The translations under genes and the position numbers were made by a program. A stretch of 7,569 nt of DNA from Oopsacas minuta (taxonomy: Eukaryota; Animalia; Porifera), in contig JAKMXF010000186.1 in NCBI GenBank assembly GCA_024704765.1, positions 1-7,569 of the forward strand, read 5' to 3'. Below, piece by piece: positions 1 through 7,569 of this stretch; the stretch's first letter is position 1; each line of letters begins with the position of its first letter. The notes below the pieces were generated by a model. The model did no database searches. It was given only the letters and a program-made list of their open reading frames with translations, and was not told where the DNA came from.

Positions 1-290
1 TACACATAGACACCTGTACACACAAGGGATACTACGCTCCTTTCACGAACAACGGATTGATTGTGGTGGATAACATAGCAGCTAGTGTCTACAGTCACAC
101 CTCTACTCACTCCAGTAACTGGTTGTGGCACAGTGTGACTAGTGGACTGGTACATCAGTTTGGTATGCATAGAGTAGGTCAGCGTGTACTGGCACCAGTA
201 CGTGTGGGGTGTAAGTTGGATGTAGGAGGAGTACTCAGTGAGCTGATGGACACACATACTCACATACACAAGTACTGTCAATGGTTACTC
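1..290 (+). repeat. Direct repeat copy A of the Hog 3' half (partner 4054..4343)
   Basis: Manual alignment gives 6 mismatches in 290 nt (positions 71, 147, 155, 183, 185, 192), about 98% identity. Identity stops right after the W-L-L codons. Confidence 0.95.
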
Positions 291-302
291 GATTCAACAT
301 GA
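1..302 (+). CDS. 5'-truncated gene 1: C-terminal end of a Hedgehog-type Hog domain (Hint block F plus sterol-recognition region)
   Basis: The frame with first full codon at 3 reads HIDTCTHKGYYAPFTNNGLIVVDNIAASVYS...GQRVLAPVR...THIHKYCQWLLDST*, with TGA at 300-302. GYYAPFT..G.IVVD..AAS matches Hedgehog GxYAPLTxxGTIVV.xVLASCY. LAPVR and IHKYCQWLL match the SRR helices FAPFR and IHWYSQLL. The supplied 57..302 ORF is an internal part of this frame. Confidence 0.9.
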   Translation, partial: HIDTCTHKGYYAPFTNNGLIVVDNIAASVYSHTSTHSSNWLWHSVTSGLVHQFGMHRVGQRVLAPVRVGCKLDVGGVLSELMDTHTHIHKYCQWLLDST

Positions 303-567
303 ACCAATGCTGCGTCCTGCATAATATTTATTGTTAGAGTTTGAAGAATATGTTTGTATATTTTGTTTATTGCTTATATTCACATGTCTAGAAGTAGGTT
401 GCGTAAAATATAATGCAGTGGAACTCTTAATCGAGTTCTACTACTGTATTTGTGCCACAAATGTTGCATTGCAATACATTAATTGTGAGAGAAATTGTAT
501 CATTATTGATTGTGTCTATTGGGTATTAGTAATAGTAATTAAGGTATTAATAATATGCTTTTGTGCT

Positions 568-578
568 TAGCTATAAGT
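568..578 (+). promoter_or_regulatory. TATA-like element TAGCTATAAGT upstream of gene 2
   Basis: The identical 11-mer lies 60 nt upstream of ATG 628 and 66 nt upstream of ATG 4645, in otherwise unalignable spacers, and contains TATAAG. Confidence 0.4.
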
Positions 579-627
579 TACAGAATGAGTTTAGAATAGC
601 CAATATTTTATGTTAGCTAGCAAATAA

Positions 628-4355: not shown

Positions 4356-4578
4356 TTTGCATTGATAAACGATGTTGTGCTTTTCGTTAATGTAATTATT
4401 GTGAGATATTATTTTGAGTGATAATGCTGTAAATATTTAAATAGTTTGTAAGGTTTTGATTTAGGCTTTCATTTGGATTAAGATAGGTTGGAAATCTTAT
4501 CTGTAATTAAACATGAACATATAATAATATGTGTATACAGGGGTCTAATTACATCTATATGTTAGATGATGGAATTAA

Positions 4579-4589
4579 TAGCTATAAGT
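4579..4589 (+). promoter_or_regulatory. TATA-like element TAGCTATAAGT upstream of gene 3
   Basis: Identical to 568..578 and at a similar distance from the start codon. Confidence 0.4.
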
Positions 4590-4644
4590 AGCTACCAAAT
4601 ATATTGCTAGTACAATATATTTCAATAAATTTCCAGTGTAGAGA

Positions 4645-7569
4645 ATGGCAGAACGTGTATCACGAGGGTCAGTCAGTAGTACCACCTCCCTGGACTTCAT
4701 AACATTACCGAATTCGCTAATGGAAGCCTCGAAAATGAGGAGACTTCACTATAACAATCCTGCTATGCGTATGATTGAAACGAGCATTGAAACCAAGAGG
4801 GCCTGCAACCAAGCAATTATATTTGCATATGGTGTGTCCGGTACAGGTGCATCAACGACATTGAACCATCTCTTTAAAATGGATCTGATTCCCACAAGTG
4901 ATAGCAAATCACAGACTACAGCAGTTACTGAGTATGTTTCAATACTAGCCAGTGAGCACTGGAAAGCAACGAATTTAAAGATATCCTTTATTGACCCCCC
5001 AGGATTCGGAGACACGAACGGGGATCATCAAGACATATTGAATCTTGCTGCCATCGAAGAATTCATTGCAAAACATGAACATTTAGGTTCCAAGTTTTAC
5101 AAATGCTATCCAAACATTGTTCTCATTACAGTGAATGTAAATGATTACAGAATTCAGGGACAGAACTCACAATTCTATAGAATGCTCAAAGCCTTTAAAC
5201 AATTGGAATTGGTAGATATTCGCAGGCCTAACTTAATTATTGTGATGACCCATATCATGACCACACCAAAGGGTAGCTTCCAGCAGAGAATCCAAGAACA
5301 ATCAGACACTATTAAAGGCATGGTGAAGAAGCATTTTAGCATAGATCCTAAGATTGTGTATGTTGAGAACAGTGCAGAAGCTTATGAACTTCCTAAAGAT
5401 GGAGATTGGACTGTTCTACACGATGGAACGAGACAACCTATCAATGTATTCGAAGAGATGATTAAACTGATGAAGAATAATGGAGATGAAATGGGTGTGG
5501 AAGCTAATAGAATATTCTTCGGGGATAACAAGATAAAAACTCCTGATGAAGGAATGGTGGAAAAGATTGGCACAGCAAGTGATGATAAAATACTACGTTG
5601 GACTAGTGTAATTAGCCACAGAACATATATTCCTAATAATGAATGTGCTATTGTAATATGTAAGCACCAAAAAAAATACTCTGAGAAAGTTCCTGAAGAT
5701 GCTATCCTCCCTCTAATGACCGAATTAACAAAAGCAAAAATGAGAAATTCAGAAGAAATAAGATGTAAGAGCATTTCTGAAGTACAGCAATTAGTCTGGC
5801 CTTACAAACTGAACGAATTGGATAAAGAAATTCTCATTTCAGAGTTTCAGATAAAACCACTCTATTATGAATCATTTCTAGAAGATATTGCTCATGGATG
5901 CTATACGAATGAGATAAAACCAAATACTCCAAAGATTATATTTAACTTTACAAAGCAAGAAGAGTACGAGGATCCTCGAAACGGGGTCTACTTACCATCC
6001 TGTATGGATATTGTATTCCATGATGATACCAACATTAATTGTTTTTGTAAAACTAAGACCGATAACTTATACACAGATAACAACTCTGAGAGATTAGAGG
6101 CATTATTGCAAACACTAGAGGACCCGAAGGATGAAACAAAACAATACACATTCGTATTCTTAGTCACACACACAGTGTTTACTTTGTCAATTAAATCGGA
6201 ATATCTAAAATACATAAACCCAGAATTCAAACAATCAGTATACGATCTGCCAGACTCATATAGAGCTGAATCAACAGAAGAAGATATCACAATACACCCA
6301 CATTATCTGAAGTTTTTGAAAGAATTCGGACACTGCTTCAGGACCCATTGGGAAGGAGGAGGGAACGTTAGTGGTCAAATAGTTTTGGATATTTCTGAAA
6401 AAGATATACAAAACGCCGAGAGCATTATGAAGAGGTATCTCAGGATGCGTATCTGTAATAGTAATCTTAATATGCTAATACCTAGAGATAAATTCGTCCA
6501 ATATGTTTTCGAAGCATTGGATAAAGCAGAGCTATCATGGAATGGAGGGGTAGCACTACCCATTCATGATAATGCACTACGCGGTCTTGATTACGCAAAA
6601 TGGGAAACATGGAAGCGTTCACTGTGGGATAAGCCAATTCCATTGGAAAATATCCTACTCAGTCCAGTGAACTTTCCAATCTATTCTATCGTGAAGAACC
6701 TGGATCAGGTGAATTCTGAGGCGAAATCTGAACAAATACGGCACACTTTAGAAGTAATAGCACCAGAGGAATACGATATATATGACAGGATATCAGTGAT
6801 AGAGGCAGAGATCTCCCTACAGAGTGTTATATTAATCAGTCAGGAACCAAATGAATACCAGGAGGTCAGGCCACGTAGATGTAGTAGTTTCATTGGAGAT
6901 GAATATTTACAAGATTGGTGTAATTTAACCATTGACGACATCCTCATAAGTGATTCTACGAGAGAAAATGCAGCTCGTAGAGCTAGAACCAATACAATTA
7001 GTACAATAGATTATGGATACCCAAACAGTGCTCGGGTATGGAGGAAAAAGAACGAACATTTTCATGCAGAAGAGATTCAAATGATAGATTTAGAGACAGG
7101 GGATTTAGTACAATGCATTGATAGTAAAGATCAACGCCGACACTTTTTGCGAGTAAGAGTTATTCCAAAAGTACCTGGAGAATTCTATTACATCCGGGCA
7201 GTTCATGATCGTGGGTCTATAGAGATTGGTGCATTGAATTACATCTGTACGGGTAGAAGAATCAAGAAAATACCTGGAAGAAAATTGAAACCAAGAAACA
7301 CACTGGTATGGGCAGAACCACAGGGAACTAAAGTGAAAACTACTTGCATAAAACAATTGTGCCTTGCTAAAATGAGCGGAAATATTCAACCAATTATTGA
7401 TGATGCTGGTTCCATGAAACTTATTGTGAATGATATTATTTGTTGTGGAGGAGAAGCTGACGGATGTTTCCCAGGAAATGCTTGTGTAATATTGAAAGGA
7501 GGAGATAGAGTTAGAATGGATGAATTGAAGATAGGAGATTATGTGTTATCCATACATCCTACTACATAC
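4645..7569 (+). CDS. Gene 3 (3'-truncated): paralogous GTPase-like - MACPF - degenerate Hint - Hog protein, >975 aa
   Basis: Manual translation from ATG 4645 (agaATGG) gives 975 stop-free codons to the window end: MAERVSRGSVSS...AYGVSGTGASTTLNHLF...FIDPPGFGDTNG...KCYPNIVL...YLKFLKEFGHCFRTHWEGGG...WNGG...WKRSLWDKP...GYPNSARV...ADGCFPGNACVILKGGDRVRMDELKIGDYVLSIHPTTY. It is colinear with gene 2 throughout. Confidence 0.92.
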   Translation, partial: MAERVSRGSVSSTTSLDFITLPNSLMEASKMRRLHYNNPAMRMIETSIETKRACNQAIIFAYGVSGTGASTTLNHLFKMDLIPTSDSKSQTTAVTEYVSILASEHWKATNLKISFIDPPGFGDTNGDHQDILNLAAIEEFIAKHEHLGSKFYKCYPNIVLITVNVNDYRIQGQNSQFYRMLKAFKQLELVDIRRPNLIIVMTHIMTTPKGSFQQRIQEQSDTIKGMVKKHFSIDPKIVYVENSAEAYELPKDGDWTVLHDGTRQPINVFEEMIKLMKNNGDEMGVEANRIFFGDNKIKTPDEGMVEKIGTASDDKILRWTSVISHRTYIPNNECAIVICKHQKKYSEKVPEDAILPLMTELTKAKMRNSEEIRCKSISEVQQLVWPYKLNELDKEILISEFQIKPLYYESFLEDIAHGCYTNEIKPNTPKIIFNFTKQEEYEDPRNGVYLPSCMDIVFHDDTNINCFCKTKTDNLYTDNNSERLEALLQTLEDPKDETKQYTFVFLVTHTVFTLSIKSEYLKYINPEFKQSVYDLPDSYRAESTEEDITIHPHYLKFLKEFGHCFRTHWEGGGNVSGQIVLDISEKDIQNAESIMKRYLRMRICNSNLNMLIPRDKFVQYVFEALDKAELSWNGGVALPIHDNALRGLDYAKWETWKRSLWDKPIPLENILLSPVNFPIYSIVKNLDQVNSEAKSEQIRHTLEVIAPEEYDIYDRISVIEAEISLQSVILISQEPNEYQEVRPRRCSSFIGDEYLQDWCNLTIDDILISDSTRENAARRARTNTISTIDYGYPNSARVWRKKNEHFHAEEIQMIDLETGDLVQCIDSKDQRRHFLRVRVIPKVPGEFYYIRAVHDRGSIEIGALNYICTGRRIKKIPGRKLKPRNTLVWAEPQGTKVKTTCIKQLCLAKMSGNIQPIIDDAGSMKLIVNDIICCGGEADGCFPGNACVILKGGDRVRMDELKIGDYVLSIHPTTY
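4813..5484 (+). other. Gene 3 AIG1-like GTPase-fold domain with a degenerate P-loop
   Basis: G1 GVSGTGAST (4831-4857, Lys replaced by Ala), G3 DPPG (4993-5004), G4-like MTH (5245-5253). About 55% aa identity to the gene 2 G-domain core by manual count (about 86/157). Confidence 0.8.
5881..6760 (+). other. Gene 3 MACPF domain
   Basis: FGHCFRTHWEGGG (6325-6363) has signature spacing; WNGG (6538-6549); WKRSLWDKP (6610-6636). Boundaries are approximate. Confidence 0.72.
7015..7446 (+). other. Gene 3 degenerate (pseudo-)Hint domain
   Basis: GYPNSARV...IQMIDLETGDLVQCID (block A-like, Cys1 replaced by Gly); GSIEIGALNYI aligns with Hog GHLHISANHLI (His lost); GNIQPII..GSMKLIVNDII aligns with GYYAPFTNNGLIVVDNI. 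Length is 144 aa. Confidence 0.65.
7465..7569 (+). other. Gene 3 Hog domain start (truncated by the window end); repeat partner of 3418..3522
   Basis: G|CFPGNACVILKGGDRVRMDELKIGDYVLSIHPTTY, with the canonical Gly-Cys scissile junction. Confidence 0.92.

Follow-up and report, generated by a model that had tools for sequence, protein, structure and literature searches.

Why should the C-terminal module of neighbouring sponge genes be nearly identical, down to its synonymous sites, when the parts in front of it are saturated with changes? The question is raised by a stretch of Oopsacas minuta DNA of 7,569 b (here called the window), which is the entire scaffold C186 of a 61.46-Mb genome in 365 contigs; the published assembly is described as 365 scaffolds of about 61 Mb with 36% GC (PMC10280926). 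Three tandem, co-oriented genes, W1, W2 and W3, lie on the + strand as intron-less single open frames. Only the last 302 b of W1 are present, with the stop codon at 300-302; W2 occupies 628-4355 and W3 runs from 4645 to the scaffold end. The predicted architecture of this gene family is a P-loop GTPase domain, a MACPF domain, usually a dead Hint copy, and a live Hedgehog-type Hog, composed of Hint and an adduct-recognition tail. We consider it most probable (about 0.85) that the Hog is homogenised by long-lasting concerted evolution through interlocus gene conversion, limited to a homology island. The front parts, judged from their sequences, are old paralog lineages that were distinct before O. 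minuta split from the other genomes carrying the family.

Sharp edges delimit the identity between the genes of the window. From the TGT codon of the predicted catalytic cysteine, Cys1 (3418 in W2, 7465 in W3), 103 of 105 nt are identical, the differences lying at 3423 and 3442, and the 15-nt blocks just 5′ of TGT match at 4-9 of 15 positions, which is the chance level. At the other end, W1 and W2 agree at 284 of 290 nt (1-290 versus 4054-4343), and beyond the W-L-L codons the agreement drops to 5-14 of 30. The jump at TGT and the divergence past W-L-L, both noticed in the initial annotation of the window, were thus reproduced. A dedicated repeat search of the scaffold recovered both Hog repeats, and no terminal repeats or duplications were found by it to flank the Hog block. 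In W1 the homogenised 3′ part of the Hog (1-290) comprises the Hint end, with a Pfam Hint match, and the adduct-recognition tail; private last codons and the stop TGA follow (291-302), identity being lost right after W-L-L. The W2 Hog begins with 188 nt from TGT (3418-3605; Pfam Hint E-value 3.6e-15) that match three copies on contig C33, called A, B and C, at 98-99%. It is interrupted by an assembly gap of 246 N (3606-3851), the estimated length of which is almost certainly too long, and continues as Hint with a low-complexity loop and the adduct-recognition tail up to W-L-L (3852-4343), at 96-97% identity to A and B and 77% to a further copy, D. The private last codons of W2 (4344-4355, with the stop TAG at 4353-4355) have diverged after W-L-L. 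Of the W3 Hog the first 105 nt are present (7465-7569, compared above with 3418-3522), and these are 98-99% identical to B and C. The AT-rich spacers between W1 and W2 (303-627; 5-14/30 identical to the spacer after W2, GC 0.30-0.32) and between W2 and W3 (4356-4644; sequence comparison and GC content) are not homogenised.

Further family members were found by whole-genome searches of the O. minuta contigs. The Hog-bearing genes are A, B and C, in tandem at 457-468 kb of C33; D, dispersed, on C88; E and F, in tandem on C133 (337247-343532, − strand; locus L024); and G, at 609 kb of C33. A split pair, H1/H2, lies on C45, and the genes I (C45), J and K (both C33) are Hog-less. No free-standing (solo) Hog copies and no donor archive were found in these searches of the O. 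minuta genome. In the six clustered copies (W1-W3, A, B, C) the Hog of about 690 nt is 96-99% identical. Codon alignments of A, B and W2, the W2 Hog being read with X at the gap break in all analyses, gave a synonymous divergence (dS) of 0.04-0.08 and a nonsynonymous divergence (dN) of 0.02-0.04 for the Hog. In the same alignments the front parts have 28-35% amino acid identity and a proportion of synonymous differences (pS) of about 0.75, that is, saturation. The initial observation that synonymous sites are homogenised along with the protein is confirmed by these values. Between W2 (front part 628-3417) and W3 (4645-7464) the front parts are 35% identical in amino acids, with saturated pS; by domain, identity is 49% in the G domain, 30% in MACPF and 25% in the dead-Hint region. 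The initial estimate of about 55% for the G domains, and less for MACPF, was roughly right.

All six clustered copies have the 5′ edge of the block at the TGT codon. The same holds for the independent E/F pair, where the Hog is only about 32% identical to the window Hog and, within the pair, 433/435 nt are identical from their own TGT to the Hint end. The 3′ edge varies. It lies at the W-L-L codons in W1, W2, A and B, and after YYAPFT in C, which then has a different tail; in E/F the block ends with the Hint and the tails have diverged. The initial placement of this edge at the end of the sterol-recognition region (SRR) therefore holds for W1, W2, A and B and fails for C and E/F. Between copies, the dead Hint-like domain has diverged as much as the rest of the front part. 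The 5′ edge is seen to fall between two homologous Hints, the dead copy just 5′ (about 2977-3417 in W2, 7015-7464 in W3) and the live Hog 3′.

Homogenisation depends on linkage, as the dispersed copy D escapes it. The front part of D is sister to that of A (51% amino acid identity, dS 1.47), but the Hog of D lies outside the cluster, with dS of 0.48-0.59 to A, B and W2 (about 0.48 to A). G, situated 150 kb off on C33, has a Hog unrelated to the cluster at the DNA level.

To place these copies among other genomes, about 45 full-length homologues from a word-based protein search with the Hog of B (L026:6132-6818, − strand) were compared; they lie on ENA-derived contigs of up to 1.18 Mb, and 'same contig' was treated as 'same genome' throughout. 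The tree of the N-terminal parts shows well-supported ortholog types, W2, W3, B, A, D, C, X and Y, each with about one gene per contig group (P0015, P0017, P0019, P0025 and P0031 are orthologues of W2; P0005, P0010, P0013, P0022 and P0034 of W3). The contig label changes 38 times on this tree, as many times as under random labelling. The Hog tree groups by contig, with 23 changes (0/200 shuffles as low), and on it the scatter of types W2, B, W3 and X reaches its maximum. Approximately unbiased (AU) tests on the Hog tree rejected a W2-type clade (ΔlnL 647, p = 9e-14) and a B-type clade (ΔlnL 503, p = 2e-28); on the N-terminal tree, a clade of OmA, OmB and OmW2 was rejected (ΔlnL 1713, p = 1e-41).

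The same reversal is seen in pairwise identities. Genes of different type on the same contig have median identities of 29% in the front part, 96% in the Hint core and 94% in the tail; for same-type genes from different contigs the medians are 52% (front part) and 79% (Hint core). For pairs on one contig, identity is 7% over the last 30 residues ahead of the Cys and 97% over the 30 that start with it. A low-complexity loop in Hint is a Ser/Gln/Glu, an Asn or an Ala-Thr run depending on the contig group, and is common to all paralogs of the group. Constraint alone is excluded for this loop, because it differs between contig groups yet is uniform within each. The D-type genes, which lie on other contigs, serve as an internal control: their Hogs form a lineage of their own that diverges faster, at 59-69% identity between genomes, and copies outside the cluster thus escape homogenisation. 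Every N-terminal ortholog type carries a Hog in all contig groups sampled, so the Hog fusion is older than the genome splits. The initial annotation had proposed that dS and phylogenies of the Hog be compared with those of the upstream parts; the unequal dS and the reversed trees obtained support conversion.

These results suggest a mechanism in which repeated non-reciprocal copying between clustered paralogs, during homologous-recombination repair, would keep the Hog at 96-99% identity. The Hog, being constrained, would stay similar enough for continued recombination. The unconstrained upstream linker, last codons and spacers would have lost homology long ago, and the heteroduplex would stop there; the sharpness of the edges could be attributed to such a bistable dynamic. 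Homogenisation would have been maintained since before the genomes diverged. Two further observations are compatible with this. Sites with two states across W2, A, B and C fall into interleaved, incompatible patterns (0101 at columns 40 and 348, 0011 at columns 130, 373, 376 and 423), which suggests several exchanges; little weight is given to this, as phasing among 97%-identical repeats in a hybrid assembly is unreliable. GC content at third codon positions (GC3) is 0.44-0.50 in the homogenised Hog (3540-4343) versus 0.31-0.34 in the front part (628-3417), the rise starting about 120 nt past the Cys codon. The raised GC3 would fit GC-biased conversion and is taken as a weak hint.

The Hog is the most persistent island in the family and is not uniquely privileged, because in other gene pairs the homogenised stretch lies in the G domain, the MACPF core or Hint only. 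H1 (C45 16441-18495, + strand) and I (21336-23648, − strand), which are convergent, are 97.8% identical over 871 nt of the GTPase domain and unalignable at the DNA level outside this island. J and K are 86.8% identical over 561 nt. In two other contig groups, Y-type and A-type genes (P0009 versus P0007/P0020; P0035 versus P0032) have an island of about 100 residues in the MACPF core at 88-93% identity, with flanks at 20-40%. P0048 combines an A-type front part with a C-type adduct-recognition tail that is about 97% identical to the tail of the C-type P0049, which shows that tails are exchangeable between types. Of the initial proposal of gene conversion confined to the Hog, conversion is thus upheld by the dS values, the edges, the escape of D and the reversed trees, and the confinement has to be relaxed in view of the islands elsewhere.

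Some points weigh against long-lasting conversion as the explanation, or limit it. Repeats broke the assembly. Single-nucleotide polymorphisms (SNPs) may in consequence have been assigned to the wrong copies, to the detriment of the four-gamete argument, and Hog identity may have gained slightly from short-read polishing. The cross-genome evidence is at the protein level only, and among the contig groups some may represent a cluster duplicated within one genome instead of separate species. The E/F island shows no rise in GC3. Conversion alone leaves unexplained why the first codons of the island are uneroded, and unequal crossing-over in the array may have contributed.

A wider function for the conserved module can be imagined, in which the Hog is both a shared recombination handle and a common processing unit for clustered, diversifying GTPase-MACPF effectors. 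On this view an identical module for self-cleavage and adduct addition would be kept by selection, for instance if all cargos depended on a single cofactor or partner, and the shared homology would let tails and front parts re-pair, as in P0048. We regard this role as unlikely. If true, it would be a eukaryotic germline counterpart of the logic of constant module and variable effector known from polymorphic toxins or variant surface glycoproteins (VSGs). The C-terminal domains of trypanosome VSGs and the bacterial polymorphic toxins combine a constant recombining module with a variable effector, and in the toxins Hint acts as a releasing peptidase. Here, unlike in those systems, the constant part sits at the C-terminus, the variable parts belong to stable ortholog lineages instead of being shuffled cassettes, and there is no silent donor archive and no evidence of programmed switching.

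Spread of one Hog by unequal crossing-over in the tandem array (birth and death), instead of by conversion, would be expected where tandem co-oriented genes share a 0.7-kb homology block, and copy number and type content do vary between contigs. However, such events would drag along the last codons, the spacer and the neighbouring gene, all of which are unlike between copies. Each cluster retains a single gene of every ortholog type, whereas types would be duplicated or deleted by repeated exchange. As the main process, crossing-over is very unlikely, and conversion is the presumed molecular route.

The second possibility raised in the initial annotation was a recently spread cassette, in which one Hog was lately joined, at the Cys codon, to Hog-less or different front parts. 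The exactness of the 5′ edge at the Cys codon in every copy, the Hog-less J, K and I beside the cluster and on C45, and the exchanged tail of P0048 speak for this scenario. It is nonetheless highly improbable: all N-terminal types carry the Hog in every other contig group, solo copies, an archive and flanking terminal repeats or duplications were missing in the searches described above, and the tract ends of C and E/F differ from those of the remaining copies. The SNP mosaic among copies, with its unreliable phasing, also argues against a single event. The cassette reading is thus abandoned.

Near-identity could also be an artefact of collapsed repeats, chimeric joins or homogenising short-read polishing. 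The O. minuta assembly is a hybrid SPAdes/SSPACE/Pilon/GapFiller build that used de Bruijn graphs and mate-pair scaffolding (PMC10280926). The start, the end and the sole gap of C186 all lie within the Hog repeat, and the 7.6-kb scaffold resembles a repeat-bounded loop omitted from the C33 array. Against this, the three C33 copies stand in gap-free sequence on a 957-kb contig with copy-specific differences, each unique front part runs unbroken into the repeat, and the pattern recurs in independent assemblies on the long contigs mentioned above. Polishing could not have brought reads that differ as much as the front parts do to 97% identity. An artefact of this extent is hardly to be expected. 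Least credible of all is extreme purifying selection on the Hog, synonymous sites included (e.g. by RNA-level constraint), without exchange between copies: the Hog is indeed the most conserved part between genomes (77-79% versus 43-68% for front parts) and its CFPG start is common even to distant Hogs in the genome, but each contig group has its own substitutions and loop indels, which all its paralogs carry, Hog orthology is rejected by the AU tests, the D-type Hog, a singleton, shows faster divergence, and dN/dS of about 0.3-1 among copies does not indicate strong constraint.

Concerted evolution of paralogs is well described, in mammalian gene pairs (PMC2720389) and in theory (PMC3924837). 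The present case shares with these systems the greater closeness of paralogs within a genome than of orthologues between genomes, the homogenised synonymous sites, the discrete tracts with diverged flanks, the participation of linked copies and the escape of a dispersed one. It differs from them in that conversion keeps hold of a single module in a gene of four domains, in that the 5′ edge lies on the catalytic Cys codon in two independent groups, and in that the state persists across several diverged genomes with the rest of the gene at about 30% identity. Concerted evolution itself is textbook knowledge and no new mechanism is revealed; the locus offers a clean natural example of domain-limited concerted evolution with a switch at the catalytic Cys codon. 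In families of this kind, a Hog phylogeny reflects the history of the locus, not of the gene.

Like Hedgehog and the nematode warthog, groundhog and quahog proteins (PMC2362128), the proteins of this family have a C-terminal Hint with an adduct-recognition region behind unrelated fronts, and Cys1 and the His of TxxH are kept. They differ from those Hog proteins in the GTPase-MACPF front that lacks an obvious signal peptide, in the dead Hint before the live one and in a His for Asp46. The sole case of two virtually identical neighbouring Hog domains described by Burglin in 2008, in Nematostella, was read as a recent duplication, and the words 'conversion' and 'concerted' are absent from the main text (PMC2362128). 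Amphioxus AIG1/GIMAP GTPase-HINT proteins (PMC12373286) share, in the passages of that paper that deal with HINT and MACPF, an immune-type GTPase, a C-terminal HINT and the context of invertebrate defence genes; the fusions described there are CARD+AIG1+HINT, with another GTPase class and, unlike here, no MACPF, and these passages contain nothing on a homogenised HINT. In the literature searched, neither GTPase-MACPF-Hint proteins nor gene conversion of Hog domains was the subject of any paper, and there was no Hog/Hint case with such persistence and an edge at the catalytic codon. Sponges carry a large unstudied set of Hog fusions.

The chemistry of the Hog was predicted by comparison with known Hint domains. 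Pfam Hint (PF01079, cut-off 29.7 bits) matches the two W2 pieces with 56.6 and 45.4 bits and complete copies with 107-115 bits. The CFPG start falls on Cys1 when aligned with Drosophila Hh-C (1AT0/6TYY), and S-A-N-H aligns with T-P-A-H of the TxxH motif, the His being kept and Ser replacing Thr69. A His occupies the position of the Hedgehog general base Asp46 (PDB chain 6TYY likewise has His here), and Val replaces Cys143. Asp46 and Cys143 define Hedgehog cholesterol chemistry, not Hint membership. Judged by these residues, the Hog appears able to perform the N-S acyl shift and to set the GTPase-MACPF part free, which would make the front part a cargo released by self-cleavage; its adduct chemistry may differ from that of Hedgehog. 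The proteins have no obvious signal peptide, and the front part is cytosolic-looking.

Domain assignments in the front parts are weaker. MACPF scores 22.6-23.1 bits against a cut-off of 21.5, which is marginal, and two matches fall below their cut-offs, MMR_HSR1 in W2 (18.2 versus 21.9 bits) and Septin in W3 (24.5 versus 26.2). The Walker A motif is G-H-G-K-S in W2 and G-x-G-K-S/T in paralogs. W3 (residues about 62-70) and all its orthologues have G-T-G-A-S, with G-S-G-A-S in P0034, and thus lack the Walker A lysine; the W3 lineage may be a pseudo-GTPase. The dead Hint-like domain between MACPF and the live Hint has G-[FY]-P for C-F-P (GYP in W2), and Pfam scores this second Hint in B and D.

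The assembly gap in W2 has to be read with care. As written, the 246 N put the W2 halves out of frame, as 246 is divisible by 3 and the frame needs a gap of 3n+1. In A, B and C the counterparts of the pre-gap and post-gap pieces are exactly one base apart, and because of this the gap length is judged most likely an artefact; the true gap is probably about 1 nt, with the Hog continuous and in frame. C186 itself is probably a repeat-bounded segment (loop) left out of the C33 array, because other genomes have W2-, W3-, B-, A- and C-type genes together on one contig and the scaffold is bounded by the Hog repeat. Its placement and copy content are uncertain. The reading of C186 as an allelic copy of the C33 array was rejected, as identity between the front parts of W2 and W3 and those of A, B and C is no more than about 30-35%. 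The homogenised Hog explains why the assembly breaks at these genes, and copy number and linkage here are unreliable for annotation. The short private tail of W1 resembles W3-type tails, and W1 and W3 could even be one gene.

Two of the family paralogs are carried as O. minuta proteins LOD99_14047 and LOD99_15253. In the split pair on C45, H1 is a GTPase-MACPF frame and H2 a Hint-bearing frame, separate open frames about 200 nt apart (C45 18495-18693; L025). A frameshift, an intron or breakage of the gene could account for the split.

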